A stretch of 64,000 nucleotides of DNA from Hydrolagus colliei (Eukaryota): assembly GCA_035084275.1 (NCBI GenBank), contig CM068775.1, positions 1,240,001 through 1,304,000 on the forward strand, in the 5' to 3' direction. The notes below the pieces were generated by a model that was given only the letters and a program-made list of their open reading frames with translations, did no database searches and had not been told where the DNA came from. Each line of letters begins with the position of its first letter. The stretch's first letter is position 1. A program made the translations under genes and the position numbers. Below, in pieces: positions 15,581-55,298 of this stretch.

Positions 15581-16512
15581 TTAATTTGCTGGCGATTGTG
15601 ATCCTGTCAAGAGGAAACTGTGGCCTCTCAATGTGCGTCACTCGCTATCTGGAGGCCATGGCAGCCGTGGATCTCCTGGTTGTCCTCGTGGATGTGTTGT
15701 TAAACCAAATTAACAATCTGTATTTCCCATTAAATTTCTTATTCTACACTCCAGTGTGTAGTGTTAGAGTGGTGTTGATGAGTGCAGCATTGCTCATGTC
15801 TTTGTGGTTCACTGTTGCTTTCAGTTTTGACCGATTTATCGCCATTTGCTGCCAAAAGCTGAAACCAACATATTGCACGGAGAGAACGGCCACAGTGGTT
15901 ACTGTAACTCTGTCTGTTTGTAGCTGCGCAGTCAGCATTCCTTGTTACTTTATATTTGATCCTCAGTTCACAGTTAACAATACCCCGTGGTACTGTATCT
16001 TCAAACCAAACATTTATACTTTGCTCACCTGGAAATTATACGAAAGGTTTATCCGTGTTTTTAATCCACTGTTTGTGTTTGCTTTGATTTGCCTGTTCAA
16101 TGCTGTGATTATCAGACACATTCTGATGGCCAGTAAAGTCCGCAGGAGGCTTCGGGGTCAGAGAAAAGCTGACAAAACAATTGATCCCGAGTTGGAAAAC
16201 CGAAGAAAATCCATAATTTTACTGTTCGCCATATCAGGCACTTTTATAATTTTGTGGATAACATATGTTCTACATTCCTTCATATGGCAACTTTCCAATT
16301 TTAATTATAGCGAAACATTGGTCAATAACACCCGATATATTGTCCAAGAATCTGGACTCATGCTTCAAAAGTTGAATTGCTGTACAAACACCTGTATATA
16401 TGCATTAACTCAGAAAAAGTTCAAAGAGGAGTTTAAGAAAGGGTTAGTTTATCCCTTTGATATCATTGCTAAATTAATTATAAAATACCAGAAAAAATCA
16501 TTAGGAAAGTAA
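15581..16512 (+). CDS. GPCR gene 1, exon 2; class A 7TM receptor, GPR139/142-like; spliced product about 333 aa
   Basis: Acceptor TTCACACAG|TT gives GIP-V-NLLAIVIL in frame. TM2 D (AVDLL), ECL Cys, TM3 FDRF, TM6 W, TM7 NTCIY, helix 8 KFKEEF; no stops. Family assignment is from recalled similarity, not a search. Confidence 0.92.
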
Positions 16513-16849
16513 TTGGCTACAAACGTGGTTCAACTTCACCTACATTGGTGACTATCTTCACAAACATTGAAACTTTCCAAAATTACTGTATGATCTGTAG
16601 TTAACAGGGATGTAGTCGAGTCCTCCTCATCCTCATCCAAGTCCCTGGTGTCTGAGTCCAATCCCATGCCACTTTTTAATGTCCGAGACCGAGTCCGAGT
16701 CACTGTATGGAAGTATAATTAAATATATACCCATGTGATCAAACTATATTATAATTAGAACTAATATTGTGATAATTACTAACCTCATTAAAGTAAAACA
16801 GACACTTATACTGGTCTCGTTGAACTAAAAGAACTCTCAGTATCTTCAA

Positions 16850-17195
16850 AGAAGGTCTGGTCAACACTCATTTCTCACGGGAACAGACAGGCCTTGAGCC
16901 GGGTGGTACCACTGACACCAGCTGCTATACCTATCTCCATGTGACTTTGATAAGTAATTAGGTGTGTCAAGATAGCATTCATTTCTGTCCATTCCCTCTG
17001 TAATTCAACTAATACATTGTGTATTGTTTTAAGTGTATAAAAGGAGGAGTTGGACTGTTCCAAACTCAGAGGACAAGAGCGACTCCCATTGAGAGACGCA
17101 TATTCTCCTCTCCTTTACTAGTATTGTATTAATAAAGCGCATTCTAATTATCTGTTTGAAGTGTTGTTTTCTAATAGAAAGAGAAATAATACTAC
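16850..17195 (+). mobile_element. Solo-LTR-like repeat, copy 1 (copy 2 at 27629-27956)
   Basis: High similarity to 27629-27956, which starts TGTAGG and ends CTACA; TATAAAA and AATAAA present; TSD not found. Confidence 0.6.
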
Positions 17196-17199
17196 ACAA

Positions 17200-17430
17200 A
17201 TATCGGACTTAACATTAACCGAAGGTTCGATAGTCCGAACACACAAATTTCCTATACCCAGGGCATTTACCGTGGGTATCACTCAATAGTCCGAACCGAC
17301 AATGAAATAAGGTTATTAATCCGAACATTTGCATCCTTAGGTTTAGGGTTAGGGTTAGAGTTAGGGTTAAGCGAAGCTTCGGACTAACGAACCTTCGGAT
17401 TAATGAATCTTTCGGACTATCGAGCTATAA
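17200..17430. repeat. MITE-like element with inverted subterminal motifs and internal (TTAGGG)n
   Basis: A(G/A)TCCGAAC x3 on the left, TTCGGA(C/T)T x3 on the right, TTAGGG-like hexamers at about 17337-17368. Confidence 0.5.
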
Positions 17431-17439
17431 CCCACAGAT

Positions 17440-17920
17440 TCATATCTACCCAGGCCCACAAACACTCACACTCACCCAGATCCACACACACTAACATACA
17501 CACACATCCACCCAGGCGTGGACACACTCCCACAGTCTCAGACACTCTCATCCACCCAGACCTACACACTGATTCACACACACATTCACACACACCCATA
17601 TCCACCCATGCTCACCCAGGCCCACGAGCTTCACATACTCGCACACACTCACAATAACACATATCCACACATAGTCACTCACACTCACCCAAGCCCACTC
17701 ACTAACACACACTCAAAATCACCCAACCCCCACCGCCACACACTCATAATCACGCAGGCCACAAACACACAAACTCACAGACATTCACAATCACCAGGGC
17801 TCACACACCATCACAATCACCCAGATACCACCTCCCTCCCCCCCCCACCACACACACTGTCACTTAGGCCCACACACTCAGTATCATCCAGGCCCTCACA
17901 CACACTCACACTAAACTGAT
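17440..17920. repeat. CA-rich low-complexity tract
   Basis: Degenerate (CA)n; the overlapping His/Thr-rich ORFs are artefacts. Confidence 0.85.
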
Positions 17921-19347
17921 CACATTGCTGCAGCTCTTGGCCAGGCAGGAGACTCACTTCTCCCCTTTTATACGTTGCTGTTACAAACACAGCTTACTTT
18001 TACTGTTACTCATTTTACTGGAAGTCTATCTGCAGTTGTTTGACAATTTATATGGTCCATGTTATTGTTCTCTAAGATACGAAACATCATCTTGACAGTG
18101 AGGGCCAGTATCTCATCCCTTCCCCAATCAGCCTCACATGGCCACAGGCAGCAAAGGTGCTAATCAGTAGCACTCAGAGATGAACCCTGTTACACTTAAT
18201 CCTCAATCCCTTTAGTTTATTTCCCCAGATATTTGTGTCAGTTCCTCTATTGCTTTACAACAATATTAACCATTTTGATATAGACATGGGGCCATGTATA
18301 AAAATATTGCTGATGCCACAATAGGGGTAAGGCACACAGTCAGGAATAACCTGGAGAATTGCATAAAGTTACAGAGCGTTTAGCTGAGTTGGCAGGAAGG
18401 TTCAATATTGAGACACCAGTTTGTTGACAGTATATTTTGCGAAAAGTCACTCAAGCAAAAGCAAAATAATTGTTATAATTGGAATATGGAAGACTTGGAG
18501 ATTATGTCGATGTGAGTGTGTATCCAATAGACTATTAGAATGGATTCATTGTGTTTCACACTGGTAATCGATTGCCAATGACATATAAAGTTAACAGGAT
18601 TGTGAGAAGAGTTACTGTGTGCAGTTCTAGACATTACTATATTAAGGACATAAGAGCTCCTGAGAGGGTTTAGAGAAGTTTCACAAAGATCACAAAGATG
18701 ATCCCGGTGATTGGCGTTTACAGTGATGAGGATCAGCTGCAAACATTGTGGCTGTTCTCATAAAAATAGATGGTAAAAGAACAAACATGAAGGTTTTGAA
18801 AGACGTGACAGAGTGAAAGACGATGATATCAATATAAACTGGATAAAATATACAGGAAAGTCACTGTAAAATATAAAAGCAGAGTGGATTTTTATATAGA
18901 GATCTTTTAGAATATAGGATTCTTCATCACAATATCATAATGTGAAGTCATTTCAAATGGTATCAATAGTCACCATGTAAATGTGCAAATGAACAGGCAG
19001 AAGGTGGAATTGGAGGATTGGAGCAGGTCTGCCCTTGCTCTACCTGCAGAGTCTCAATGGAGGATTTCCGTGCTCTGTAATTCCACAGAGTTCACTTTTC
19101 CCAATGCATTGGATACAACGATTTGTTGGGAACAAACACACAAATGATTAAATCAATCTCTCCTTTATTTCTCTTAATAGTAAAAGCTTGGAAGAATTGG
19201 CAGGAGGTTCTGTGTAGTTCAATAGAGGGAAGGGAGCCCGTGAACAACTGGGAAACTTTATATACATTAATAATCAAACAGGGAAAAGAAGAAAAGTCTC
19301 AGGTTTCAATCTCCTCTGAATATATTTCTTATCCTTTATCCTCACAG

Positions 19348-19478
19348 ATTTCCCAACCGAGATGATGCTGTAAGGTTTCCCACCAGATGAAAGTGGCAAC
19401 CTCTGGCCTACTGCTTCCACCTTCATCATCCTCTTCTTCCTGAGTATGTTCTACAGCGCCACCATCACTCTAATTAAG
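19348..19478 (+). pseudogene. IgH transmembrane (TM1) exon with one in-frame stop
   Basis: Acceptor CCTCACAG|AT (phase 1), [43 protein letters not shown], donor AAG|GTGAGG. TASTFIxLFxLSxFYSAT is the conserved antigen-receptor TM motif. TAA at 19371-19373. Confidence 0.9.
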
Positions 19479-19699
19479 GTGAGGAGAGTAAATTAATTGA
19501 CGCCATGAGGTGATAGAACAGCTGCTGTTAAATACTTGTTCATGGCAACACTGATAGTGATGCTCATTACAGCCACTGTGCTGGGAAACTCTATCTGTCC
19601 TTACAGGGCAGGATCCTTGTGACTGAGCTGTGTGAAGGTGAAGGACATATCCTATCACCCTTACACACCCAATCACACCTGACATATACTCACCTGGTA

Positions 19700-21245
19700 T
19701 AGACAAGGATGGAGGAGATGGGGTCACGGAATTTGGAATGGTAGAGGACACGGGCAGCGGAATTCTGGATTATCTGTGGAGGGAGAAATTGAGAAGGCCG
19801 ACCAGCAAGGCGTTTGCATAATCGAGCCGGGATGTAATGGAGGCGTGGATGAGGGATTCAGTGGCTTTGGGGGTTAGGCATTGGCTGGGTGATCATGAGT
19901 GGGGCAATGTTCCAGAGATGGAGAAAGGCAGAGCTGGTCATTGCTTCGATGTGGGGGAGGAAATACCGTTGAAGGTTGAACAAGACACCTAGGTTCCTGA
20001 CATGCTTGGTGAAGTTGAGTGTGCAAACATGGAGGTTGATACTGCCATTGGCTGAAGGAAGGAGGCGCTGGTGTGAGCCAATCAGTAGGGCCTCGGATTT
20101 GTTGACATTCAACTATGGAAAGTTAGCTCTCATCCAAGACTTGATGTCTGACAGACAGTCTGTCATGACAGAGGCAGTCCTGGGGTTGAGGATAGAGGCA
20201 GAGAGATAGAGTTGGGTGTCATCCGCATACATGTGGAAGTTAACCCCATGTCTGTGGTTGATGTCACCAAGTGGGAGCATACAGATGTTGAAAAGTAGGG
20301 GGCCAAGGACAGAGCCTGGGGGACGCCAAGGGTGACAGTGCAGGCACTGGAAGAGAAGCCGTTGGTGGCAACAAAGTGTAGGCAATGAGAAAGGTAGGAG
20401 TTGAACTAGGTGAGGGCAAAGTTCTTGAGGTTGGGATAAAAGTATTCCGGGAAAGTGATTGAGCAGATTGGAAAGAGATTGATTTCTAAAATTGGAATTA
20501 AAGGACTGAGTGAATCTACATTGTCTTTTAGATTCAATTACATCACAGATACTTTAATATAGCTCAGTCCTGTAGCTCAGTGGTTAAAGCATTCACCTTA
20601 CATGAGACCTGTGTTCAAATCCAGGAAGGTCAGAGTTAAACCTTGGACAAATTTCCTTACTCCACACTACAATAACAACAACATAATTACATTTATAGAG
20701 CACCTTTCACGTCAGGAGGATGTCCCGTGGTGCTGAACAGTCTGGTCGGGACCCGAGCACTGGGGGGGAAGTGTCGGGGTAGGGAGAAGGAGAAGGAGAG
20801 TAGGAGATGTGGCAGAGTTAGGAGGGAAGCAGAAGGTACGGTCGAAGAGGAAGGTCTTGAGTCCGGCCTTAAGGAGGAAAGAGAGGAAGTGAGGCAAAGG
20901 GATTGTGGGATGGAGTTCCACAGTGTGGGAGCAGAGAGGCTGAGAGCCCGGCCAGTGATTGGAGGGCGGTTAGGGCGGGATACGGAGCAGGCCAGAGCCT
21001 GCTGAGCGGAGGGGTCTGTCGGGTTGATACGGAGACAGTAGGTCGGAGAGATAGGCGGGGGAAAGATCGTGAATGGCCTTGAAAGTGAGGACAAGGATCT
21101 TGAATTCGATCCTCTGGGGGATGGGGAGCCAGTGGCGATGGGCGGGGGTGGGAGTGATGTAGTCGTGGAGGAGCCTGGTGCGGGAGAGTACACGAGCTGC
21201 AGAGTTTTGAATGATCTGCAGCCTGTGAAGGGAGGAGCTAAGAAG
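19700..21245 (-). mobile_element. L2-clade LINE fragments (RT core 19700-20400; 3' end 20675-21245)
   Basis: [19 protein letters not shown]...[13 protein letters not shown]; RIKFKIL-like stretch; (AAC)n tail at about 20675. Confidence 0.8.
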
Positions 21246-22039
21246 GCCTAATAATAATCCCTCAAAAAATACAATGATAAAAATTGGTCATTTCAATCTA
21301 CAATTGTTTGTGTGTACAATTGGCTGTGGCATTTTGCCCACAATTATAGTCAATTTACTTTACGATATATGCTGTGAAGTACTTTGAGACATCTAGAAAA
21401 GCGCTAAATCAAATGCAAAGTTTATTATCACCAGTTGAACGTGTTTGTGTGTGGATTATTATACACCAATAAAAACAAACTTAAATACTAGCTCGTCACG
21501 AAGGCTGAAATTATTGATGCTATGCTTACTTCTATTTTCCAGGTAAAATTAGTTTCTCCACCCCAGCTTCACAGATGTGCCTCGTGTGTTTATGTTTATC
21601 ACCAATGTCTTGTGACAGATTATGTGATGTCTTGTTTCACGCATTTTACAAAATCACAGGAATTAAACATAGTATTGTGCAGCTCCATGAATTTTAGTGA
21701 CTTTTCTTATTGTTATTTTATATTACAGTGGGCCTTTGGGGAATAACAAATCATGTTGGGATTTAATTTAGCGTCACACCTCTCTGATATTCTTTATTTG
21801 CCGTTTACCATGTGTGAGGTGTAATGATACAGAAAGACAGAGGCTGTTATACTTTGACTTCAATCTGAAGCTGTACATATTGTATTCTGCTCCTGTATCA
21901 TAGTGCCTACAGACACTGTATACTTGTTTGCCTGAAGTATCAATAAATGATCAAACTTAGTGAGCTGTTTGTTCCCTCTCTTTCCTGTTTCTTTTGTCTC
22001 AAGTGTGTCTTGGCTTCTGATTTCCAAATGGTTCAGATA

Positions 22040-22067
22040 CACAGAAGCTCAGCATTAAACAAAAACC
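22040..22067 (+). promoter_or_regulatory. Isolated 12-RSS-like motif
   Basis: CACAGAA (22040-22046) + exactly 12 nt + perfect ACAAAAACC (22059-22067); no recognisable gene segment attached. Confidence 0.45.
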
Positions 22068-24029: not shown

Positions 24030-24590
24030 GCCATCCCACCTGCCATTGGTGATAGTTCCTCCCCATCTCCCATCAAAACCTCTCAGTTTTGACCATCTCT
24101 AATAAATCTCCCGTAAAGCTTCTCAGCTCCAAGGAGAACAATCCCAGATAATCTTGTCTCTACACAAAACTAAAGTCCCTCGTACCTGTTACCATCCTTG
24201 TAAATCTCCTCTGCAGTTTCTCCACAGCCGTGACATCATTCCTAAAGTGTGTGGCCGAGACGTGGACAGAATTCTCCAGCTAAGCACCATACAGTGGCTT
24301 GCAGTGAGTTGCTGTGGTCAAGATCACAAACGACATCTTGTCCATCTGTGACCAGAGCTCCCACTGCCTCTTCATCTTCCTCGAGCTCTGCTGCCTTTGA
24401 CACCATGGGGACCACTCAATCCTCCTCCACCACCTGTCCTCTCACTTCAACCTTTAAAGTTCTGTCCTTGACTAGTTCAGGTCCTATCTCTCACACAATC
24501 TCTACTTTGTCCCCAACAACAATTTCTCTTCCAGCATCCACACAGTCTTGATACGTCAGTGTGGACGTGGCTCGGCCTCTCCTACCTTTA
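24030..24590. mobile_element. CR1 fragment (minus, about 24030-24285) abutting an L2 RT fragment (plus, about 24290-24590)
   Basis: CR1 RFTRMVPG/LFSLE-like sequence on minus; VKITNDILS...SAAFDT on plus. Confidence 0.6.
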
Positions 24591-31865: not shown

Positions 31866-31976
31866 GAATGTGACAAAAATCGCAGGAAAACGCCAATCCT
31901 ACTGCTCCAGGCCAGGTCTACACGGTCACCGCACTGGAATATCGCAACCGGACTCAGGCATTTCCTGACTCGGGAG

Positions 31977-33312
31977 GTGCTTCTTTCTTCCTCGCCCTCC
32001 TCACTTTCTCTCTACTACCCCCCCCCCCCCCCTCACTTTCTCTCTACTCCCCCCCCCTCCCCCCCTCCTCACTGCCCCCCCTGCCCCCTGCCCTCCTCAC
32101 TTTCTCTCTACTCCCCCCCCCTCCCCCCCTCCTCACTGCCCCCCCTGCCCCCTGCCCTCCTCACTTTCTCTCTACTACCCCCCCCCCCCCTCACTTTCTC
32201 TCTACTCCCCCCCCCCTCCTCTCTGCTCCCCCCCCCCCACCTCCTCTCTGCCCCCCCTGCCCTCCTCACTTTCTCTCTGCTCCCCCCCCCCCCCTCACTT
32301 TCTCTCTACTCCCCCCCCCCTCCTCACTTTCTCTCTACTCCCCCACCCCCCCCTCCTCACTTTCTCTCTACTCCCCCCCCCCCCATCCTCTCTGGCCCCC
32401 CTGCCCTCCTCACTTTCTCTCTACCCCCCCCCCCCTACTCTCTGCTCCCCCCCTCCTCTCTGCCCCCCCTGCCCTCCTCACTTTCTCTCTACCCCCCCCC
32501 CTCCTCTCTGCCCCCCCTGCCCTCCTCACTTTCTCTCTACTCCCCCCCCCTACTCTCTGCTCCCCCCCTCCCCCCCCCCTCCTCTCTGCCCCCCCCCTCC
32601 TCCCTGCCCCCCCTGCCCTCCTCACTTTCTCTCTACTCCCCCACCCCCTCCTCACTTTCTCTCTACTCCCCCCCCCCTCCCCCCCTCCTCACTGCCCCCC
32701 CTGCCCCCTGCCCTCCTCACTTTCTCTCTGCCCCCCCCCTCCTCTCTGCCCCCCCCTGCCCTCCTCACTTTCTCTCTACTCCCCCCCCCCCTCCTCACTT
32801 TCTCTCTACTCCCCACCCCCCTCCTCTCTGCCCCCCCTGCCCTCCTCTCTTTCTCTCTGCTCCCCCCCCCCTCCTCTCTGCCCCCCCCTCCTCTCTGCCC
32901 CCCCTGCCCTCCTCTCTTTCTCTCTGCCCCCCCCTCCTCTCTGCCCCCCCTGCCCTCCTCTCTTTCTCTCTGCCCCCCCCTCCTCTCTGCCCCCCCTGCC
33001 CTCCTCTCTTTCTCTCTGCCCCCCCCTCCTCTCTGCCCCCCCTGCCCTCCTCTCTTTCTCTCTGCCCCCCCCCTCTCTATCCTCCCCTCCTCTCTGCCCC
33101 CCCTCCACTCCTCTCTTTCTCTCTGCTCCCCCCCCCCTCCTCTCTGCCCCCCCTGCCCTCCTCTCTTTCTCTCTGCCCGTGCCCCCTCCTCTCTGCCCCC
33201 CCTGCCCTCCTCTCTTTCTCTCTGCCCCCCCCTCTCTATCCTCCCCTCCTCTCTTTCTCAGTGCCCCACACTCTCTATCCCCCACTCAATCTCTATCTCT
33301 CTGTACCCCACC
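31977..33312. repeat. 1.3-kb C/T-rich degenerate minisatellite
   Basis: Units such as CCCTCCTCACTTTCTCTCTACTCCCC and CCTCTCTGCCCCCCCTG; the 447-aa Pro/Leu/Ser ORF is compositional. Confidence 0.9.
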
Positions 33313-33328: not shown

Positions 33329-35568
33329 GTGAATTGTGGCTTAAATGGATCAATCATTTTGAACGTTATCACATCGCCTCAGGTCTCAATGAAAAAGATG
33401 ACATAAAACAGGTGAGCGCACTCCTATTTTCCATGGGAGATTGCGCTGATAACATTATAATCACTCTGTGAATAGATGAGAAAACTGCAACATATGATGA
33501 AGTTATAGAAGCACTAACTGAACACTATGAAGGCAGACGAAATGTGATCGTGGAGAGGGTTCAGTTTAACAGGCGAAAACAAGTGCCAGGCGAATCCATT
33601 GATGTTTTCATACAAGATTTGTTTAGACTAGCGGATAACTGTCAATATAGCGAGCTCAAGGGCAGCTTAATCAGAGACAGAATTGTTGTTGGAGTGCTGG
33701 ATGAAAAATTGTCAGATTCTCTGCAGACCCAACCGGACCTCACGCTTGACAAAGCGGTCCATATATGCCGTCAGTCAGAGGCAAGATATAACAGCCGAGA
33801 CATTGTCCGTGGTGACACCAGGTCCACTAGCATCGATCATGTCACTAAACGCAAAACTCCATCCAACGACAACAGCTTAAAGTCGAGCAAACAAATGCAG
33901 CAAACACGAGAATGTGCTATAACCGATACATCTACATATAATGGGAATGATCAACCAACTGGGGAAGTTCGACCCTAGGTTGGCGGAGATCAACGAGCCA
34001 TTACGCCAGCTGCTACAGAAAGAGACAGCTTGGTATTGGGGTAACGCACAGCAGAGTTCATTTCAAAACGTGAAAGATTTGCTACTTTCATCTGTAGTTC
34101 TCGCTCACTATGACCCAAAACGTCCAACCTTCGTTGCCACTGACGCTTCAGCATCTGACATTGGTGCCGTTCTTCTTCAGATTCCAAGGTCGATAATTGT
34201 CAATGGTGTGGCAGACAACGCCATCCAATCTACTATGCATCACGTTCTCTCTGTGACACAGAAAAGCGATATGCAGTAATCGAAAAAGAAGCACTAGCTG
34301 CAACCGGGGCTTGTGAGAAGTTCTCTGACTATGTACTAGGACTACACTTCATCCTCGAGACAGATCACAAACCACTTGTGTCCCTTCTTCAGATGAAGGA
34401 ACTTGATAAGATGCCTCCACGCATACAGCGATTCCGCCTTCGTCTGATGAGATTTAGTCCAACAGTCCAGTAGGTTCCAGGCAAACACCAGAACACACCC
34501 GATGCACTATCCTGTACTCCTGTCGGCACACCCGAGGAATCCGACACTGCGCTGATTGCAGAAATTGAAACTTTTGCGAATCATACAATGAATACACTAC
34601 CAGCGAGTAGATGATGCCAACTTGACATCGCCGCAGCTCAAAAAGCAGACAAAGAGTGCGCGCAGATCAAAGAGTATTGCTTAAGTGGTTGGCCTGCTTA
34701 CATGCCACACACACCACCAGTTCGCCAAGGTACCCACAGGCAAACGGCGAAGCTGAGAGAGCAGTTCGTACAATGAAAGGGCTACTCAAAAAGAATGAAG
34801 ATCCCTATCTTGCCCTCCTGACGTACACAGCGTCTCCTCTCCAGAATGGCCTGTCACCAAGCGAGCTGCTGATGAGCAGGAAACTTCGAACAACACTGGC
34901 TATTCTTCCATCAAACCTTCAACCAAAGGTTCAATCCGACCAGAAGATCCGACAGAAGGAAGAGGTACATCGTGCAAACCAGCAACAAAACTTCAACCTT
35001 TGTCACCACACTAGAGATTTGCCAGAGCTTCATCCCGGCGACACTGTTTGGATCGAAGATCAGGACCGCCACGGAACTGTCCTCAACCAAACTTCCAACC
35101 CACGATCCTACATCATAAAAACCAGTCCCGGCCACAGTTCGATGAAACCGATCAGCTCTGGTTAAAGCACCACCTAAAAAACCACTACTGGAACCTCCAC
35201 CAACTACACCAACTGATGTAACAGAACAGACCGCAACTTCACCTCAGAAGTTCTCACCGTCTCCATCATTGTCACAAACGCCGAGTGTTCAACCACCAGC
35301 TGTGATGACAACACATGGACGTGTAGTGAAACCTCCTGATCGCCTTAATTTTTAAGTGATCTTAAAGTACACCTGTCTGTACTTGGGGGGAGATGTAGGA
35401 TTATGCTAATCACTATGCCTTTATATGTAGATGTAACGGTTATAGCACCTTCTCGTGACCACTGTGGTAGCACATGGAATTGCATGCTTGTGGTCTCTTC
35501 TTAATAAAGCGGTCTTACATGAAAGTCGATCTCTCCATGGCCTCTCTTTTATATCTCGAATATAACAC
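33329..35568 (+). mobile_element. Ty3/gypsy element, internally deleted (gag, RNaseH, integrase fragments, PPT, 3' LTR)
   Basis: ORFs 33544-33978 (gag), 33941-34279 (ATDASASDIGAVLLQ), 34656-35165 (YPQANGEAERAVRT); PPT GGGGGGAGA at 35385-35393; LTR 35394-35568 (TG...CA, AATAAA). Confidence 0.9.
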
Positions 35569-38470: not shown

Positions 38471-38540
38471 ATGGAATTTCCAACACTATACACTATAGTA
38501 GCTATTTACTACCCCATTCTGGTAGCTTTTGGAATTCCTG
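38471..38540 (+). CDS. GPCR gene 2, coding exon 1
   Basis: ATG 38471, MEFPTLYTIVAIYYPILVAFGIP, phase-1 donor G|GTAATT at 38541. Confidence 0.85.
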
Positions 38541-39159: not shown

Positions 39160-40900
39160 GAAGAGCAAAATTACATTTATTGAGATCCTTTCATATCGGG
39201 AGGTCATCCCAAGGCACTGAACAGTTGGATCGGGACTTGAGCAAGGGAGAGCAGTAGGTGGGATCGGCAAGAGAGAGTTCGGTTGGGAGGGAGAGAGTTG
39301 GGAGGGGAGCAGAAAGCATGATCGAAGAGGAGGGTCTTGATACCAGCTTTGAGGGAGGCAAGGGAGAAATCCATGTGAAGGGACTGTGGGATGGAGTACC
39401 GGCGATGGTAGGATGGGTCAGGAAGGGGACATAGAACAATGAACGGAGGGGTTGGGAAGGATCATAGGGTGACAGCAGGACGGAGAGATAGGAAGGACTT
39501 GAAAGTGAGGATGAGGATCCTGAATTCTGAGGATGGTAAGCCAATGGAGCCGGGCAAGGGTGAGATGCAGTCGCAGAGCTTGATGCAGGTGAGGACATGA
39601 GCTGCAGAGTTCTGGATGATCTGCAGATTGTGAAAGGAAGAGCCAGAATGGACAGAGAGGAGGGAGTTTCCATAGACGAGCCTTGATGTGATGAATGTAT
39701 GGACAAGGGTTTTGGAAGACTGAGGTGTGAGGCAGTGGCAGGGTCTATCAAGTTGCGAAGGTGGTGGAAGCAGCAGTGGTCATAGCGTGGATGTGGGGGA
39801 AGAAAGATACGCTTCTGATTGGCTTTGCGAGGTGGAGAGTGCAGCCTTGGATGCTGATGTTGCCTGCACATGAGGTGCGGAGCTGCCAATGTGAGCCAAT
39901 CAAGAAGGCATCAGTCTTGCCGTCATTCAACTGGAGAAAGTTGTCTCTTGTCCTGAACTCGTTGACAGACCAACACAACTTCAGGATGCTGGGATTACGA
40001 GAATTGAGGGTGGAAGCAGCAAGGTAGAGCGTAAGAAGTAGGAGCAGGAGTAGGCCATTCGGCCCTTCGATCCTGCCCCACCATTCAATCATGGCTGATA
40101 TTTCTTTCTAACTCAAGCTACCTACCTTATTCCCATACCACTTAATTCCTTTATAAGAGTTGGGTTTCATCCGCACACATGTGGAAATTTACCCCATGTC
40201 TGCAGATTATGTCACAGAGGGGGGCATATACAGTGTGCAGAGAAGTGGACCAAGGACAGAGACCTGAGGAACGCTGCATGAGACAATGCAGGGGCGAGAG
40301 GAAAAGCCATTAGTGGAAGCTAAGTGTAGGCGGTGTGAAAGATAGGACTGGAAAGAGTAAAGGACAGATCCTTGAAAGTTCACATGGGAGGAGAGGTGGT
40401 GGATGATTGAGTGGTCAGGATATAATTTGTGACCATGACCAGAGCAGTTTCCGTGGTGTAGGCAGCAAGGAAGACTAATTCGAGGGGATCATGGAGGTAA
40501 TTGATGAGAGAAAGTAGGGAATCAGTGAGGCAACGACATTTTCAAGGACATTCATGGAGGATTTCATGGTGATGACAAAGGATGGGGAGACAGGTTCGAA
40601 TGTGTGGAAGGAGGGATGGTTAGACATTGGGGTGTGGTGTGGGTGGTGCAGAGGGGGTGGAAGTTGGAAGGGTGGTAACAGTTGAGCGCATTCCCTCAAT
40701 TTTGGACTCGAAAAAATCCAGCATCTCCGCACAGTGGGAGTTGGAGAAGAGGATCTGAGAGATATGATGGGTAGGGCGAAGTAGCCGGTTTGTTGTGCAC
40801 AACAGGAACTTATGGTTGTTCTTCACCTCCAGGATTATTCTGGAGTAGAAGTACGATTTGGAGGAGACCAGAGCAGAGAGCTAGTTTTTGACGTGGTCCA
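39160..40900 (-). mobile_element. L2-clade LINE fragments in the GPCR2 intron
   Basis: NFLQLNDGKTDAFLIGSH and similar frameshifted RT pieces. Confidence 0.7.
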
Positions 40901-41256: not shown

Positions 41257-42218
41257 TTAATTTGCTGGCGATTGTGATCCTGTCAAGAGGAAACTGTGGT
41301 CTCTCAAAGTGCGTCACTCGCTATCTGGTGGCCATGGCAGCCACAGATCTCCTGGTTGTATTCGTGGATGTGTTGTTGAACAAAATTAACAATCTGTATT
41401 TCCCATTAAGTTTCTTATTCTACACTCCAGTGTGTAGTGTTAGATTTGTGTTGCTGGTTGCAGCATTTCTCATGTCTTTGTGGTTCACTGCTGCTTTCAC
41501 TTTTGACCGATTTGTCGCCATTTGCTGCCAAAAGCTGAAACCAACATATGGCACGGAGAGAACGGCCACAGTGGTTATTGTAACTCTGTCTGTTATTTGC
41601 TGCTCAGTCAGCATTCCCTGTTACTTTTCACTTGTTCCTCAGTTGATAATTAACAATACCCCGTGGTACTGTGTCTTCAAACCAAACTTTTATACTTTGC
41701 TCACCTGGAAATTATACGAAAGGTTTATCCGTGTTTTTAATCCACTGTTTGTGTTTGCTTTGATTTGCCTGTTCAACGCTGTGATTATCAGACACATTCT
41801 GATGGCCAGTAAAGTCCGCAGGAGGCTTCGGGGTCAGAGAAAGGCTGAGAAAACAATTGATCCCGAGTTGGAAAACCGGAGAAAATCTGTCATTTTACTG
41901 TTCGCCATATCAGGCAGTTTTATAGTTTTGTGGACAACTTATATTCTACATTCTTTGATATGGCAACTTTCCAATTATAATTATAGCGAAACATTGGTCA
42001 ATAACACCCGATATATTGTCCAAGAAACCGGAACCATGCTGCAAAGGTTGAATTGCTGTACAAACACCTTTATATATGCATTAACTCAGACTAAGTTCAG
42101 AGAGGAGTTTAAGAAAGGGTTAGTTTATCCCTTTCATATCATTGCTAAATTAATGGTAAAACATCATAAACACAAGGAAGGAAAGAAATTGGTGGCAAAC
42201 ACGGTTCAACTTCAGTAA
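41257..42218 (+). CDS. GPCR gene 2, exon 2; class A 7TM receptor, GPR139/142-like; spliced product about 343 aa
   Basis: Acceptor TTCACGCAG|TT; intact ORF with FDRF and NTFIY; longer C-tail than its paralogs. Confidence 0.92.
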
Positions 42219-46815: not shown

Positions 46816-47232
46816 TTCTGCCTTGAATCCTTCTTCCAGGAAAATACAGCATTTTGTTGACTTAATTGTTGTCACTGGTAAACTCTGGATTGATAAGAAA
46901 TGACAACATCTGTAAGTGAGTTATTCAAAGGTTCAATCTATATGCAAATAGAAGTTTAATAGATAGAAAATGATCATGGTGGAGACACTGAGATAGATTT
47001 CCAGAGGCTGGTGCCTTGTCAATAGAGGGCAACACCATTGGTGACATTGAAGGGATGGGGCAGACACATTTCAACAGTGGGCGTAACATCTGTGCAAGTA
47101 AATGTGATATATAAATATTATTTATCACAATACCTGTTGTCGTAACGAAAGAAACAGATTTGTTCCCTTCAATAGTGTTGGAATGTCCTCCCGACATGAA
47201 CGGCTCTATACATATGTAATACATATGTGGAG

Positions 47233-47345
47233 CCCTGTAGCTCAGTGGTTAGAGCACTCGCCTTACAAGTGTGAGATCTGTGTTAGAATCCAGGCAGATC
47301 AGGGCGAAACCTTGGGCAAGTTTCCTTACTCCATGTGCCCAATAA
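47233..47345 (+). mobile_element. tRNA-derived SINE (family also at about 20570, 37620, 38188, 44480, 48385, 48760, 59960 and in minus-strand copies)
   Basis: GTAGCTCAGTGGTTAGAGCA A-box head followed by AAACCTTGGGCAAGTTTCCTTACTCCA. Confidence 0.75.
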
Positions 47346-49068
47346 TAATCCGTCCAAAAAAACCCACAATAATAAAAATTGGTCATTTCAATCCATGGCT
47401 GGTTGTGGGACGCTGCTGAGTTTCGCCCACAAATATACAGTCGACTTTCCTTCCTTTTTTCCCCCTGCCACGACCCCTCCCCTTTTGCTTCTTTACCCCC
47501 TTTTGCCCCTAGTCCCACTTCCGTGACTGATTGTGGGACACTGCTGTGCGCAATTTGGCTGCCATGTTTCGCCCACTAATACAGTTACTTTTCCTACTAT
47601 GCTTTATCCTGCCCTGATCCTTCCCACCCTGCTCTTGTCCTACCTGACTGTACAGCGCCTTGCGATGTCCTCTCGACGTGAAAGGCGCTATATAAATGTA
47701 AGTTTTGTTTTTTGTTGTTTGAGTGCAATTGGCTGCTGCGATTCACCCAAAAATATACAGTCAATTCACCTTACAGTACATTCTGTGAAGCAATTTGGCA
47801 CGTTGATAAGATGTGAAAACGCAATATCAAATGCAAGGATGATTAACATTATTAATTATTGTTGTTGTTTCCATCACCAATACTTTTCCTGAAATATTCA
47901 AAAAAAATTACAAACACAGCGGAGGCTGCTTTCAATTCTCAGCTCTGTGGTTTCAGTTGGTTAAACTCCAGCAGTTCCCCAAAGCTCACACTCTGGTTCC
48001 TCAGCCTTGGGTCTTGCTGACCTGATCCAAATACTGTCTGGAATCAGGTAAACAGGATGTTTCCTCCTGGTAAAGCTTGTTCATTCCATTCCAAACATAG
48101 CAATTCCCATGTGTGGGTAGTATGGACCTCACTAACTTGCTTTAAGCTTGATAATGGGTTTGTGACACCCAGCTGACAAGATGTTATTATACGTCATAAT
48201 TATAGATATATTTCATTAAGAAACTTTGATACATAAATACTGGTTATATTTTGGTTGAAGGTGGGTAGGTGATGAATTATGAAGGCTTAGATATTGGTCT
48301 CAAAAAACGTAGAGTTTATATTTCATTGTTTACTCACAGAAAATCAACATTCGATGTAAATTTCTGTGGCTCGATGTGGAGTTCTGTAGCTCAGTGGTTG
48401 GTGTACTTGTCTTAACAGTGAGATATGTGGTTGTGCTTCCCAGAGGGTGAAGGTGAAGATATGAAAAGGCGCTATATCACATGCAAGGATTGTTATATTC
48501 AAAGATTACGAAGAAGGCACAGCTGCCGATTCACTGACAATCACTGACAGTAGAAATGCAAAAGTAGTTAGTTGCATAAAGTGGTTGGGTTATCATGATT
48601 AGACAGAGGATCCTCTGACTCGATGGATTCCTATTGTGTATTACAGTACTATGAGGCCAAGATAGTGCAGTATTGGGAAAGACTTTAGGAAATATGATTT
48701 TTTTTCAGATATTCAATTTAAAAAGTAATTTGACCCCGAAATTTCATATTGTGCAGTCGTGTAGCTCAGTGTTTAGAGCACTCACCAAGTAAGCCAATGA
48801 CCTGGATTTGATTCCCAGCAGGATGAAACATTTTGCAAGTTTCCTTGAGCCACACACCTCTGTTTACCTAGCAGAGTGCAATTCTCATGTGAAAACACTA
48901 TTGGTTATTCACTGGTCTGGAATTAATTGCATTAATTACAATCATTAATCAAGTTGCACCATCACATTCACGAAAAGTACAAATTTCTCTCAGTGTGAGC
49001 TCAGTGAGTTGATTGAAGCCTCCAATTCAGCACGAAAACCAGTTTTACACCAGAGTGTAAATCAGGGC

Positions 49069-49138
49069 ATGAAATTTCCAACAGTGTACGCTATAGCAGC
49101 TATTTACTACCCCATTCTGGTAGCATTTGCAATTCCAG
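49069..49138 (+). CDS. GPCR gene 3, coding exon 1
   Basis: ATG 49069, MKFPTVYAIAAIYYPILVAFAIP, phase-1 donor G|GTAATT at 49139. Confidence 0.85.
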
Positions 49139-49759
49139 GTAATTCTATTTGTTTTCATGGTCTGGCAATTGTGAAGAGACGAGTTGAATTGGCATTTTGT
49201 ATGGTGGCTTATCATGTCTTCTAGAAATCTCAAATCAGTTCAAAGAATATACGGCAAAGTGAAATGACTTTGTATTTGTGGGCGAAAGGTGAGAGCTAAT
49301 TGTGTGTTTCCGTGTCCTACAAACTATCATGTATTGAAATTATCAATTTTATTAACTGTTGATGTTGGATTATTACCAATGGTGGAGTGAGGAAACTTGC
49401 TGAAGGTTAGTCCTGACCTGCCTGGAATTGAACACAGATGCATCGCTTGGTGAATGGTCTAATCACTCAGCTACAGGACACGGTTACAGAAATGGGGATA
49501 ACCAGGGCTATGAATCTGAAAGTACAACTTGATCTGAGACCTGGTGCAGACTCAAAGAGCCAAAACATCTCTGTTCTCTTGCAAATCTATACGACTCATA
49601 ATAACTTTTCTGAATTCAAATATAACTATCAAAAATGGACACACAATTTGTGGCTTTTAGACGAACTGGGTTATTCAGAGAAGGCACTGAATAATTGTAG
49701 TATCATATTTTTGAGACATTTTTCTGGGATTTCAACCTTACAACAACAACAATGACAAA

Positions 49760-51440
49760 ATTACACATATAGAGCACGTTTCAGATTGGGAGGATGTCCC
49801 AAGGTGCCGATCAGTCAGGTCAGGATCCAAGTAAGGGAGTGGGGCAGGGTAGGGGTTTGGGCTTTAGAGTGTTAGGAGGGGAGGGAGAGATTTGGGAGAG
49901 CAGCAGAGGCATGGTCGAAGAAGACTAGCCTTGAATACCGGTGTTGAAGGAAGCAAGGGAGGAATCCAGGTGCAGGGAATGTGGGATGGAGTTCCAGAGT
50001 GTGTGGGCAGAGATATTGAAAGCCCATCTGCCAATGGTAGGACAAGTCAGGTGGGTGACATGGAGATGACCACAGACCACTGAATAGGGCGATCTGGCAG
50101 GTTCATAAGCGGACAGAAAGTTGGAGAGATAGGAGGGGGCCAGGTAATGAATGGCCTTAGAAGTGTGGAGGAGAATCTTGAATTTTATCCTCTGGGGATG
50201 TTGAAGCAATGGAGCCGGGCAAGGGTGGGAGTGATGTTATCACAGAGCTTTGTGTAGGAGACGGCATGAACCACAGAGATCTGGATGTTCCGCAGATTGT
50301 GAAAGGAAGAGCCAGAAACGACAGTGAGGAGGGAGTTTGCATAGTCGTGCCTTGATGTGATGAATGTGTGGACAATGGGTTTGGTAACCTGAGGGGTGAG
50401 GCAGTGCTGCCATCTGGCAATGTTTCAGTGTTGTTGATGTGGGGGAGGAAGGACAATTAAGGGTAGAACTAGACACCCAGGCTTGCGTGACTTTGAGAGA
50501 TGGAGAGTGCAGCCTTGGAAACCGATGCTGCCAGTGCCTGAGTTGTGGAGTTGCTGACATGATCCAATAAGGAGGATATAGGTGCATCACATCATGGGAA
50601 GATTTCATGGTGTGATAGTGGCTGTTATGAAGAGAATGGGAACTATCCGGATGAAAAGTACAGGTTGACTGTGTCGGCAAGTAGTAGCGTAAGGAGGCGG
50701 AGCTGGGTGGTAAGGAGTCGAGTCGGGATGGGATCCAGAGAGCAGATGGTGGACATCATGGAACATACGGTTGTGATGACAAAGGATGGGGAGACACGTT
50801 CTCCCCATACTCATCCATTCTGAAGGTACAAAAGTCGGGATCAATGAGTCAATGAATGAACGAACGAACAAATGAACGAACGGACGGACCGACCGACCGA
50901 CCGACCAACCAACCAATCAAGACTTACATTTATATCATGCCTTTCATGTCAAGAGGACGGCCCAAGGCACTGTACAGTTCGGTAGGGACAAGAGCATAGA
51001 GGGAGGGATCGGGCAGGATGAAGACGAGTAGGAAAATTAACTGTTTATTTGTGGGAAAAACGCAGCAGCCAAATTGCACAGAGTAGGGATAGGTAGATGT
51101 TGGGGTGTGGGAGGGTGGTGTGTGGGGGCAAAAGTTCTAAGGGTGGTGACAGCTAAGTGGATTCCCTCGATTTTGGACTCAAGGTCATCCAGCATCTCCT
51201 CACAGTGGAAGTTGGAGGAGAGGATCTGAGAGGTGGACGGGGAAGGGTGGAGGAACTGGTTTGTTGAGGAGAATAGGAACTTTTGGTTGTCCTGGATTAT
51301 CCTGGAGTAGAAGTACAATTTGCTGGAGACCAGAGCAGAGAGGTAGTTTTTGATGTGCCAGATATGCCAGTGGACCATTAGAGCAGATTTGAACCAGGTA
51401 AGTTCAGCGCTCGACACCTGATCTTTGAGTAACTGGAGGT
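49760..51440 (-). mobile_element. L2-clade LINE fragments in the GPCR3 intron
   Basis: HPQRIKFKILLHTSKAIH...WAFNISAHTLWNSIP; (AAC)n tail at about 49740-49755. Confidence 0.7.
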
Positions 51441-51530
51441 GGCTGGTGATCGAGGGTAAGGTTCGAGAGTAACAGTTTGGAAAGAATCAGGAGAAATAAT
51501 TTTGCTGATTGTTTAATGCAGGCTACCTTA

Positions 51531-54180
51531 CAAGGCCGTACGCAGGGGGGGTGCGACGGGTGCGTACGCACCCCCCCCCCCCCCAAATTATAAAAGGTCC
51601 ACATTTTCCGGGGTAGAGAATTGCATTTTTTTAAATCAAATTTAAATACCAAGTAAATTTATTGAACATTTGTGCAACAATCAGTTCTTCAAAACTATGT
51701 ATAAATTATAAATACACATCTTTGAATGATTTAGTATTAATATAAAATTATCGAGTCGCACACCAGAATCGGCGTCTACCCCAAAACATACCGCGTCGAT
51801 ACACCAGTCCATGACGCGGCGAGTCTGTGACTCGTGATTGGATAAACAATAGGCGCCAAGACTCAAATCCTCGTTTGGAAATCATCCCGTAAACAGCCAC
51901 AAGGGGCAGCACCAATTCTGGAGTTAAAATCATCTTTTCATCTGATCACCGTAAGTAAAAATGACTCAAGTTTTGAGAGGTGTGACTGTAATGCCGGCAA
52001 ACAATGACAACATATTTACAAGATTCTGAGAAATTAAAGCTTTTGAGAACCCAACAAAAAAGTTATATGTGTCTGGACGGGAATGCCTATCTTTAAAAGA
52101 AATACTCATGGACGTAGACCTAATGCTTTAGCGCCTATTCCACGTGGTGTGTCAATCGGAAATCATCCCGTATACAGTCACTACATAAAAAGGTAGCACC
52201 ACTTTGTGGAAGCTGAAATCGTATTTTAATCTGATAATGTTAGCAATTGATAATAGTGCCTTAGTACATTGTCAGACAGCTCAGAGGCTTCACAGAACGT
52301 ACTGTAAAGTGGCCAGTTTTTGCCCAGGATTGTCCCACAAACACCGATGGAGTGAGTCACCGATTTTATTTGGGGGCGTTTGTTGGCCAGGACAACAGGA
52401 GAGAGACTTCCCTCCGCTTTTCGAGTAGTGTCAGAGGATCTTTTCACATCCATCTAAACAGACGGATCAGACCTCGGTTCAGCATCTCAACCAAAAGAAC
52501 AGCCTCTAACCCCCCCCCCCCCCCCCCCCCCCCACAGCACCACATTGAAGTGTCAGCTTCCTCTGTGTGATACCGAGTGCCGACGTGGGGTTTGAACCCA
52601 CAACTTTCTGACTCAGAGGCCAGAGTGCTATTCACTGTGCCAGGCGACTCGCCAGGTGATGCTGCTGTCTTCTATCACCTGTGGGAAACTTTCTTTCCCT
52701 CCTACTCAGTGCCTCTGAATCTGAAGACATTCCCAAGGTCGAGGTTGCATATCTGACTGATTGACAACTGAGATTTATTTTCAGGGTTTGTGGGCAGTGT
52801 CACGTAATTGGCTATAACTTAAAGGATTGTTAACCTGCACCTGTTAGAGTTGAGGTCCCCAGAACTGCTGCCTCACACCAGCGGGATATAAAGGACAGGT
52901 GCAGTCGAGTCTGCAAAGCAACAGCTCTTCCTACACAAATCTCTTCAACGTGACTCCTCTGAAAGTCACTCTTTCTCTCTTTGAATAATAATATAATCCG
53001 TGCATTTCATGTAGCGAGGTAGGTTAGGGTCGGTCTACCTCGTGTTCTGTGACCGTGCAATGGTTCCCATAGGATAGTAGCACTATGGACAGTTTCCTCC
53101 CGGCTTCTCCAGCTATGTCCGCTAAACCTAAGACGCCTCTGCAGTAATGTCTGTGATACCAGTGTGGTGGTGTACCATATAGCTCACTATTTGTCAGATG
53201 CTGTCGCCAGTAAACGTTCAGGGCGTCTCTTAGAAGCCTGGTATATACCTCACGAGTCACCTAATCTCCTGGGTTTGCCTAAGTGTCCAGCATTCTGCTC
53301 CGTATAGGAGCGACTTTCAGCCCTCGCGTTAATGCACATTCATTATAATATGGTAATCGATATTGGTAGAGCGGTTGACGTATTGGCTTCAAAGCGACCG
53401 AGGCGTCTCGAATACGGAACGCTATTAAAGAATTAATTTCCCCTCCCTTATTTTTTCAAGTATTTTTTCGTCAGATCAGTATTGCTCGATGCCTTTCATT
53501 TTGATTCTAAATAAATAAATAAAAACTAACTACACTATTGCTCACAGTTCAACGATATTTTCAGGATAATGCTGATAACAGGCTTGTAACACGTGTGAAT
53601 TAACTGTTTGACACTGATTTTCAGTTTCTGTATATTTTCTTGTCTTTTATAAAATTTGCTTTGCTGGAATATCTGAGCACATCATTCATACGTTACTCTT
53701 ACATTATTGTTCATTACAGTCCGAAAGAAATTTAGTCTTAGGATAACAATGCAGAACAACTTATTAATTACCGTCAATCTGTAGTTTATGATCATTTTCT
53801 CTATACGCATACATTTATCAAGCATTCGTCATTGTACTGTGTTAATTGGATTGTAATTTACTTTATCGTTCGCATTCCTTACATCATCGAGTCAACAATC
53901 GTGTTGGCTTTTATCGGCGAACACATTCTACCTTCCCAATTAGACGGACTACCGGGGAAAATATAAACACTGAATAAATAATGATGCTCTTAAACACCAA
54001 GGGCATGAAACATTTACCGTTCATATTGGATCTTCTGAATCGATTAAATAAGACCTCAAACTGTGCAAAACGTCGGAGACCTCGAGGGGGCCTCGGGGGC
54101 AGCCCCCAAGCCCCCGGCCATTGATGGTCCCATCACTAGCAATTCGCACCCCCCCATTAAACATCCTGCGTACGGCCCTA
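51531..54180 (-). mobile_element. Non-autonomous hAT-like DNA transposon, copy 2, in the GPCR3 intron
   Basis: Reverse complement of 5364-8006. Flanked by the duplicated target CTACCTTA (51523-51530 and 54178-54185); the empty site GGCTACCTTACAACAAGG is at 15390-15407. Confidence 0.9.
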
Positions 54181-54366
54181 CCTTACAACAAGGCCACAAT
54201 TCGAACCTGTATGAAAGGTTTGCTAAAAGTTTGAGATATGGACGATGTTCGCTAGGAATTGAATCAACTCAAAGAATAAACAACCAAATATGACACACCC
54301 GTAAGCTCCTCATCTCACACCTGTATTCATGTGAATAATTTTTCCTATTTTCTTTCCTTCACACAG

Positions 54367-55298
54367 TTAATTTGCTGGCGATTGTGATCCTGTCAAGAGG
54401 AAAGTGTGGTCTTTCAAAATGCGTCACTCGCTATCTGGTGTCCATGGCAGGCACGGATCTCGTGGTTGTCCTTGTGGATGTTTTGTTAAACAATATTAAC
54501 AATCTGTATTTCCCATTAAATTTCTTATTCTACACTCCATTATGCAGTGTTAGACTTGTCTTTGTGGCTGCAGCAATGCTCATGTCTTTGTGGTTCACTG
54601 TTGCTTTCAGTTTTGACCGATTTGTCGCCATTTGCTGCCAAAAGATGAAACCAACATATTGCACGGAGAGAACAGCCACAGTGGTTATTGTAACTCTGTG
54701 TGTAATTTGCTGCTCAGTCAGCATTCCCTGTTACTTTTTATTTGCTCCAAAGTTGATAATTAACAATACCCCGTGGTACTGTATCTTCAAACCAAACTTT
54801 TATACTTTGCTAACCTGGAAATTATACGAAAGGTTTATCCGTGTTTGTAATCCACTGTTTGTGTTTGCTTTGATTTGCCTTTTCAACACTATGATTATCA
54901 GACACATTCTGATGGCCAGCAAAGTCCGCAGGAGGCTTCGGGGTCAGAGAAATGCGGAGAAAACAATTGATCCCGAGTTGGAAAACCGAAGAAAATCCAT
55001 AATTTTACTGTTCGCCATATCAGGCAGTTTTATAGTTTTGTGGACAACTTATGTTGTGCATTCTGTCATATGGCAACTTTCCAATTATAGTTATAGCGAA
55101 ACATTGGTCAATAACACCCAATATATTGTCCAAGAAACTGGAAACATGCTGCAAATGTTGAATTGCTGTGCAAACACCTGTATATATGCTTTAACTCAGA
55201 CTATGTTCAGAGATGAGTTTAAGAAAGGATTAGTTTATCCCTTTCATATCATTGCTAAATTAATGATAAAACAGCAGGAAAAAACGGTAGGAAAGTAA
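54367..55298 (+). CDS. GPCR gene 3, exon 2; class A 7TM receptor, GPR139/142-like; spliced product about 333 aa
   Basis: Acceptor TTCACACAG|TT; intact ORF with FDRF and NTCIY. Confidence 0.92.

Follow-up and report, generated by a model that had tools for sequence, protein, structure and literature searches.

Human GPR139, known from the structures 7VUG-7VUJ, is an orphan class A receptor for L-Trp, L-Phe, and melanocortin-type peptides, and its true orthologs are highly conserved. Olfactory receptors (ORs), TAARs, MRGPRs, and the formyl-peptide receptor-like vomeronasal receptors are lineage-specific class A expansions with positive selection on the binding pocket. Here, we describe three tandem paralogous genes for G protein-coupled receptors (GPCRs) of class A, termed A, B, and C, in a stretch of 64,000 nt from Hydrolagus colliei (assembly GCA_035084275.1, contig CM068775.1, positions 1,240,001 to 1,304,000 of the forward strand). 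This whole stretch is called the window, and all positions are counted from its first letter. The comparison of the three proteins with each other and with GPR139 indicates a real and statistically supported divergence that is focused on the pocket and probably results from diversifying selection.

Among solved structures, GPR139 is the best match of the trio: a single sequence reached an E value of 7e-7 (mu-opioid receptor: 1.6e-5), and a profile of the family 1.7e-18 (69.8 bits), followed by CCR5 with 2.6e-14 (56 bits). Over the aligned segment, the identity to human GPR139 is 24%. A gapless alignment reveals common features, i.e. DR(Y/F), S3.39, W3.41, W6.48, N7.49-x-x-x-Y without Pro7.50, and an Asn at the usual Tyr5.58. 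In addition, variable sites of the trio align with the GPR139 contacts 2x62, 3x32, 3x33, 3x36, 7x38, and 7x42, and the sub-pocket formed by transmembrane helices (TM) 2, 3, and 7 matches the deep pocket of GPR139 in which the phenyl ring of the agonist sits. In contrast, E3.32, F3.33, I3.36, H5.42, R6.51, and the Trp residues in extracellular loop 2 (ECL2) of GPR139 are not kept, and Pro6.50 is replaced by Thr. W6.48 is the only agonist contact common to GPR139 and the whole trio, with N7.39 as an additional one in copy C. The trio has an ECL2 hairpin and a disulfide pair with C3.25, for which GPR139 has no Cys in the alignment, and an N-terminus of only three residues. The family of the trio has two coding exons and many tandem copies, whereas GPR139 is one conserved gene. 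Judged by sequence, the three proteins are distant relatives of GPR139 and not orthologs.

The fold was predicted for copy A with AlphaFold2, using an input that included 106 relatives (pLDDT 88.9, pTM 0.84). The model contains seven TM helices and helix 8 (residues 4-34, 41-71, 80-113, 124-148, 172-218, 226-261, 274-300, and 302-330), a long TM5, and an ECL2 beta-hairpin (149-155 / 158-164). A Foldseek search with this model yielded 1,764 matches, 1,432 of them with E <= 0.001, and the best 50 were class A GPCRs throughout. The top matches were peptide receptors, i.e. NTSR1, CCK1R, and the galanin, somatostatin, opioid, and chemokine receptors, with TM-scores of 0.68-0.74, and by fold NTSR1 and CCK1R outrank GPR139. 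The trio has in common with them the ECL2 beta-hairpin that is disulfide-tied to TM3. It differs by an identity of only 16-21%, by the almost absent N-terminus, and by the lack of Pro6.50 and Pro7.50.

The likeness to the ORs, TAARs, MRGPRs, and vomeronasal receptors lies in the tandem arrays, the rapid birth of paralogs, the changes in the TM3/TM7/ECL2 pocket, and the conserved intracellular face. However, the genes of the trio have an intron within TM1, while the coding regions of ORs and TAARs are single-exon, and recent shark duplicates of the family keep their pockets. Relatives from Callorhinchus milii have the common states K2.62, I7.39, and R7.43, each of which has been replaced in at least two of the three window copies.

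All three genes are encoded on the plus strand within 43 kb of the window and consist of two coding exons with intact open reading frames (ORFs). The spliced products of A, B, and C have 333, 343, and 333 amino acids, respectively, and no internal stops. Coding exon 1 of gene A (12772-12841; tblastn, ATG, GT donor) extends from Met1 to the first base of codon 24 and encodes the N-terminus and most of TM1, and coding exon 2 (15581-16512; ORF, AG acceptor, Pfam 7tm_1 with 69.6 bits) comprises the remainder of codon 24 to the stop, i.e. the end of TM1 through helix 8. The respective exons are at 38471-38540 and 41257-42218 in gene B and at 49069-49138 and 54367-55298 in gene C, supported by tblastn and a splice donor for exon 1 and by ORF, Pfam, and a splice acceptor for exon 2. 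The sequence-only reading of this DNA had let the region begin at 15581, which coincides exactly with the start of exon 2 in gene A, and it had overlooked the short first exons. These exons of 70 nt, found by tblastn with the N-termini of full-length relatives, are located 2.7-5.2 kb upstream of the exon 2 ORFs; they begin with ATG, end with a G in front of a GTAAT donor, and encode M-E/K-F-P...GIP, with the first base of codon 24 at their end. The exon 2 ORFs open in frame behind a polypyrimidine tract and a CAG acceptor and end at 16512 (A), 42218 (B), and 55298 (C). The introns are GT..AG introns of phase 1 after codon 23. At the end of gene B (42186-42218), the stop codon of A and C has been lost, and 10 extra codons are read.

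Pfam PF00001 (7tm_1) matches the three proteins with 69.6, 70.7, and 79.1 bits (cut-off 30.5). Of the class A micro-switch residues, N25 (N1.50), D54 (D2.50), S3.39, D107-R108-F109, W249 (W6.48), N293 (N7.49), and Y297 (Y7.53) are present, as is the cysteine pair C83 (C3.25) and C162 (ECL2). Pro6.50 and Pro7.50 are both Thr in the trio, and the respective motifs are class A variants (LWxTY and NTCIY); Thr is found at 6.50 in 92 of 120 family members and at 7.50 in 117 of 120. The first intracellular loop (ICL1, 'GKCGLSKC') and the second ('AICCQKLK') are Cys-rich and almost invariant in the family alignment. The Thr-for-Pro replacements together with the Cys-rich loops are an unusual signature among class A receptors.

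Residue numbers were anchored on C3.25 and DRF, D2.50, W6.48, and N7.49/Y7.53. The three copies differ in 99 of 333 aligned codons, 29 of which have silent differences only and 70 an amino-acid change. Ten positions within the 325 alignable codons have a different residue in each copy ("three-way" positions), i.e. codons 66 (2.62), 87 (3.29), 90 (3.32), 91 (3.33), 94 (3.36), 148, 150, 257 (6.56), 283 (7.39), and 287 (7.43), and three further ones are located in the divergent C-terminal tail. The sequence-only reading had listed eight variable positions, and a recount confirmed all states, in the order A/B/C: 2.62 Q/K/N, 3.29 V/F/L, 3.32 M/L/V, 3.33 S/V/A, 3.36 L/F/M, 6.56 F/L/V, 7.39 L/T/N, and 7.43 K/R/M. 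Its statement that multi-nucleotide codon changes are involved was also correct, as several of these codons differ by two nucleotides. In codons 1-325, eight nucleotide sites are tri-allelic, and six of these occupy the first or second position of codons 87, 90, 91, 150, 283, and 287. The outgroup states are K2.62, S3.33, I7.39, and R7.43. Starting from the outgroup state, most pocket changes need a single nucleotide step, and they fall on separate lineages, so that one multi-nucleotide event is not the explanation.

The differences are concentrated in a few short segments, all on the plus strand. The TM3 pocket stripe 3.29-3.36 (codons 87-94), in which 3.32, 3.33, and 3.36 are GPR139 agonist contacts, reads VVLMSAAL in A (15769-15792), FVLLVAAF in B (41445-41468), and LVFVAAAM in C (54555-54578). 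The TM7 segment 7.39-7.43 (codons 283-287), aligned with N271 (7x38) and L275 (7x42) of GPR139, reads LMLQK (16357-16371), TMLQR (42033-42047), and NMLQM (55143-55157), respectively. Codon 66 (2.62), aligned with F85 (2x62) of GPR139, encodes Q in A (15706-15708), K in B (41382-41384), and N in C (54492-54494). A second hot spot, which the earlier reading had overlooked, comprises the TM4 tip and the first ECL2 strand (codons 148-155), where seven of eight residues vary: IFDPQFTV in A (15952-15975), SLVPQLII in B (41628-41651), and LFAPKLII in C (54738-54761). Two single-copy changes were found elsewhere. Codon 122 of gene B (41550-41552) encodes Gly, at a site that is Cys in 119 of 120 family members (ICL2 'YCTE'), and codon 48 of gene A (15652-15654) encodes Glu at 2.44, a position occupied by V, L, M, or I in the family. 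Two further changes are common to the whole trio and sit at or near the pocket and the TM5 kink: 3.37 (codon 95; 15793-15795 in A) is Leu in all three copies and mostly Asp, Glu, or His in the family, and codon 189 (16075-16077 in A; 5.50 by the gapless GPR139 alignment) is Val in the trio and Pro in 113 of 120 members.

To define the pocket independently of the trio data, we used the agonist contacts in the cryo-electron microscopy structures of GPR139 (PMC8807744), i.e. 2x57, 2x62, 3x32, 3x33, 3x36, 5x43, 6x48, 6x51, 6x54, 6x55, 6x58, 7x30, 7x38 (= 7.39), and 7x42 (= 7.43). They correspond to 14 positions in the trio (codons 61, 66, 90, 91, 94, 181, 249, 252, 255, 256, 259, 275, 283, and 287). 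The alignments of TM2, TM3, TM6, and TM7 to GPR139 are gapless from conserved anchors. For TM5, Pro186 or position 189 could be 5.50, and the gapless GPR139 alignment favors 189; the pocket result is the same for either choice, since neither candidate 5.42 residue varies. ECL2 was excluded from the main test, with HMMER placing W166, I169, and W170 of GPR139 at codons 150, 153, and 154 and MAFFT placing them at 160-167.

Six of the ten three-way sites belong to the list of 14 pocket positions (hypergeometric P = 3.7e-7), and the enrichment persists when the universe is restricted to the outer helix halves and the loops (P = 3e-4). Of the 77 amino-acid state changes, 13 affect the pocket list (by permutation, P = 1.5e-5 over the whole gene and 3.6e-4 over the outer half). 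A purpose-written maximum likelihood codon model on a star tree, with common branch lengths that were scaled to the silent rate and with two fixed site classes, gave a ratio of replacement to silent rates (omega) of 3.7 for the pocket versus 0.62 for the background. Likelihood ratio tests (LRTs) of the pocket omega resulted in P = 5e-7 against equal omegas and P = 2.4e-4 against omega = 1. Six or more three-way positions among the 14 never occurred in 20,000 runs of a neutral simulation (omega = 1); with branches 1.5-fold and 2-fold longer, the P values were 1e-4 and 7e-4, and the latter covers the case that the divergence of the deep intron is the truer neutral rate. The changes do not affect the whole pocket: half of the list, i.e. 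the TM5/TM6 wall, is strictly invariant. Identical in A, B, and C are the TM5 pocket wall, W6.48, Y6.51, H6.54, S6.55, W6.58, the second ECL2 strand, and the activation switches.

The earlier claim that the variable positions line the pocket held only in part. Positions 2.62, 3.32, 3.33, 3.36, 7.39, and 7.43 match GPR139 contacts, but 6.56 does not. The helical phase puts 3.29 on the TM3 contact stripe, and it suggests that 6.56 lies off the contact face, in a stripe of 6.49, 6.52, 6.53, and 6.56 that would be turned by 40-140 degrees from 6.48, 6.51, 6.54, 6.55, and 6.58. The changes at the four positions of this stripe are conservative.

For comparison, the same codon model was applied to nine shark genes of the family (loci L002-L010), which form three trios with identities of 85-91%. 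Their pocket omegas were 0.13, 0.39, and 0.36, versus backgrounds of 0.46, 0.32, and 0.28, and none of the three shark trios had a three-way pocket site. Three more divergent relatives of the holocephalan clade, two of them from C. milii, had 0.50 changes per site in the pocket versus 0.53 elsewhere, in contrast to 0.93 versus 0.24 for the window trio by the same measure. The negative controls show that the method is not biased towards a positive result and that the burst is specific to the window trio.

On the scale of the family, the pocket list has a mean entropy of 2.04 bits versus 1.25 bits for TM positions generally (P = 3e-4), and the two TM positions with the highest entropy are 3.32 and 3.33. 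Among 35 close pairs within species, the pocket excess was 1.3-fold (P = 0.08), and 39 pairs between species showed no pocket excess. Pockets are thus kept in recent shark duplicates, yet the pocket is most variable over deep time, and pocket diversification looks episodic rather than continuous. A family-wide behavior like that of odorant receptors is not claimed, in view of the weak excess in pairs and the conserved pockets of the shark trios.

The region from TM5 to the third intracellular loop (ICL3; codons 171-234) is located on the plus strand at 16021-16212 in A, 41697-41888 in B, and 54807-54998 in C. The sequence-only reading had described it as nearly invariant and as almost identical even at silent sites. 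The first part was confirmed at the protein level, with replacements in five of 64 codons, whereas the remainder of exon 2 has them in 57 of 237 (Fisher P = 0.003). The second part did not hold: silent differences affect seven of 64 codons versus 16 of 237 elsewhere, which is nominally more (P = 0.29), and the pairwise silent divergence (dS) is 0.10-0.16 versus 0.08-0.14 in the rest. The invariance is therefore ordinary purifying selection on the protein (omega 0.07-0.27), and gene conversion or nucleotide-level constraint as its cause was rejected, since dS is the same as elsewhere.

These patterns are best explained by a reading that we regard as moderately probable, namely that the trio are recent, apparently functional tandem duplicates that became sub- or neofunctionalized, with a common signaling output and anchor and with ligand choice divided in the TM2/3/7 sub-pocket. 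After duplication, replacements would have outpaced the silent rate in one sub-pocket, i.e. 2.62 at the top of TM2, 3.29, 3.32, 3.33, and 3.36 in TM3, 7.39 and 7.43, as well as 7.31 in copy C, and in addition in the first ECL2 strand. The invariant TM5/TM6 wall and second ECL2 strand would serve as the common anchor for a constant part of the ligands, and the TM2/3/7 sub-pocket would read a variable part that differs for each receptor. The size and polarity of the sub-pocket differ by copy, e.g. at 7.39 (L/T/N), 7.43 (K/R/M), and 2.62 (Q/K/N), and these substitutions would be expected to alter ligand selectivity. The invariant cytoplasmic face from TM5 via ICL3 to TM6 would point to one common coupling partner and one signaling output, and G-protein coupling is thus predicted to be the same in A, B, and C. 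The three proteins may each recognize a different member of a set of related small ligands or short peptides; the N-terminus of three residues argues against large protein ligands.

Several observations weigh against diversifying selection, and the earlier proposal of it stands only in part: the replacement excess at homologues of agonist contacts with an omega of 3.7 supports it, but the blind site test that had been proposed along with it does not. The comparison of M1a and M2a with three sequences and a star tree gave 2dlnL = 3.4 (P = 0.18); the sites with the top posteriors were the flagged positions, and with three sequences the power of the test is too low. As this test was not significant, the claim of an omega above 1 rests on the structural prior. 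The pocket was assigned by homology at 24% identity to GPR139 and not from model coordinates, the alignment of ECL2 to GPR139 is ambiguous, and only three sequences are behind the signal. The trio was picked for its pattern, so the P values are optimistic. The background omega is high (0.62 versus 0.28-0.46 in the shark controls), and radical changes occur at family-conserved sites (Glu 2.44 in A and Gly for Cys122 in B), which together hint at some general relaxation. Lastly, the genealogy of exon 2 is not that of its flanks. The flanks (14975-15580 and 16513-16630) group A with C and have B as the outlier (13, 39, and 13 unique sites in A, B, and C), but the silent sites of exon 2 that are unique to A, B, and C number 6, 4, and 13 (chi-square P = 8e-4). 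Conversion or recombination has occurred in the past, so that dS may be an imperfect measure of the neutral rate.

It is unlikely that the pattern is a result of relaxed constraint, i.e. that partly redundant or pseudogene-bound copies let the pocket drift while a few structural regions stay constrained. Such drift would be in accordance with the whole-gene omega of 0.47-0.81, which is roughly double the value in the shark control trios, with the loss in B of the near-invariant Cys122 and of the usual stop and the Glu at 2.44 in A, with the good fit of M1a (62% of sites neutral, and M2a not significantly better), and with a total of 10 three-way sites, versus a neutral expectation of about 9. 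However, drift leads to an omega near 1 without favoring any region, and neither the accumulation of six three-way sites in the pocket (none of 20,000 neutral runs; P = 7e-4 even with doubled branches) nor the LRT of the pocket omega against 1 conforms to this. All three ORFs are intact, the omega of TM5-ICL3 is 0.07-0.27, and the TM5/TM6 half of the pocket list is invariant.

Gene conversion, either a homogenization of exon 2 with the pocket codons left over or an import of patches from divergent paralogs elsewhere in the genome, could also have generated clustered differences such as those in codons 87-94, 148-155, and 283-287. Besides the discordant genealogies of exon and flanks, it would account for the lower divergence of exon 2 and about 450 bp of the adjoining intron (0.06-0.16), compared with 0.13-0.31 in homologous segments deeper in the intron. 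Yet the GENECONV check suggested by the sequence-only reading, performed as a GENECONV-style permutation of the longest identical runs, detected no significant tract inside exon 2 for any pair (P = 0.11-0.98), and a marginal A-C run (P = 0.035) appeared only when the intron was included. Silent divergence is even along the exon, TM5-ICL3 included, and the dS of TM3 (0.05-0.23, based on only about 10 silent sites) is below the level expected for an import from distant paralogs. Neutral homogenization would have erased the pocket differences too, so their survival would still imply selection, and we consider conversion quite improbable as the explanation. The remaining alternative is chance combined with ascertainment, i.e. 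one lucky trio among many in vertebrate genomes that was picked by eye. The selection of the trio for its pattern, the non-significant blind test, and the restriction of the signal to 14 codons are in its favor. However, the pocket list was taken from an independent experimental structure, the P values of 4e-7 to 4e-4 would survive a correction for thousands down to hundreds of comparisons, and four control trios of the same family lack a similar pattern, which makes chance very unlikely. Diversifying selection focused on the pocket is thus preferred.

The trio belongs to a group of proteins that is found mainly in cartilaginous fishes. Among the best 120 protein matches, 118 carry a species name, and all 118 are from cartilaginous fishes. 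Almost all of the 120 are automatically annotated as "probable GPR139", and many of the shark matches are located on common contigs. The closest match is a C. milii protein with 72% identity; the window proteins themselves are absent from the searched protein database. The cartilaginous-fish members are 47-72% identical to the trio and are built of two exons in the same way; the trio and the loci of C. milii and of sharks have the phase-1 intron after codon 23 in common. Phylogenetic analysis places A, B, and C in a clade of their own (support 99), nested with C. milii proteins in a holocephalan clade (support 100), from which 98 shark and ray proteins are set apart. When 1.8 billion representatives were scanned in full, about 106 clusters at 50% identity (E <= 1e-30) were detected, and beyond these only isolated relatives in coelacanth, salamanders, and one teleost with 28-31% identity. 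From these sequence relationships, the trio can be assigned to what appears to be an ancient "GPR139-like" family of jawed vertebrates that is much expanded in cartilaginous fishes. We found no published description of this cartilaginous-fish "GPR139" expansion in the literature.

One C. milii relative (P0003, WEZY01002705.1) has a frame shift in the ECL2 region (locus L001, 10916-10921), which the annotated protein skips, and it may be a pseudogene or the result of an assembly error. Two exons of the same layout are found at this locus, which also contains a partial, more distant family member at its end, on the opposite strand. Repeats that are common to this locus and the window are only 65-78% identical.

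The window also contains several repeats. Two pairs of copies, 5365-8006 and 51531-54179 (inverted) as well as 8007-8907 and 63101-64000 (direct), are 98.6-98.7% identical and probably originate from a transposable element of young age or from the recent copying of a segment. The inverted copy is located inside the intron of gene C and explains its length of 5.2 kb, versus 2.7 kb in A and B. An element of the type of long interspersed nuclear elements (LINEs), with long ORFs for an endonuclease (Exo_endo_phos_2) and a reverse transcriptase (RVT_1), is found on the minus strand at 10013-12566 and ends about 200 bp upstream of the ATG of gene A. Homology upstream of A, B, and C starts only at about 12510, so the promoter-proximal region of gene A may have been replaced. 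A C/T-rich minisatellite with periods of 29, 46, 64, and 104 and a G+C fraction of 0.60 extends from 31995 to 33145. A Pro/Ser-rich ORF of 447 amino acids and an antisense Gly/Arg/Glu-rich ORF in this segment are generated by the minisatellite and were rejected as spurious. Four further ORFs, 34656-35165 on the plus strand and 8794-9351, 20693-21193, and 39191-39889 on the minus strand, have no Pfam match. Several of them overlap with repeats of the window or of the C. milii locus, and they are therefore probably decayed transposon remnants.

That duplicated GPCRs diverge in the pocket and keep the G-protein face is a well-known pattern, and the trio adds a case and a lead to it, not a new principle. 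On a larger scale, it points to a large expansion of GPCRs in cartilaginous fishes that is hidden by the automatic name "GPR139", in which the clusters at 50% identity number about one hundred and a shark genome has dozens of genes or more. Classical odorant receptors are very few in cartilaginous fishes, and the nearest relative of the family senses aromatic amino acids and peptides. By analogy, the family might therefore be an unrecognized vertebrate class of chemosensory or other environment-reading receptors, with pocket bursts after some duplications, although we regard this as doubtful. If the proposed division of ligand choice is true, the trio would be a compact natural experiment, in which about eight to fifteen residues part otherwise identical receptors, and the residue differences would mark the positions that set ligand choice in an orphan family.

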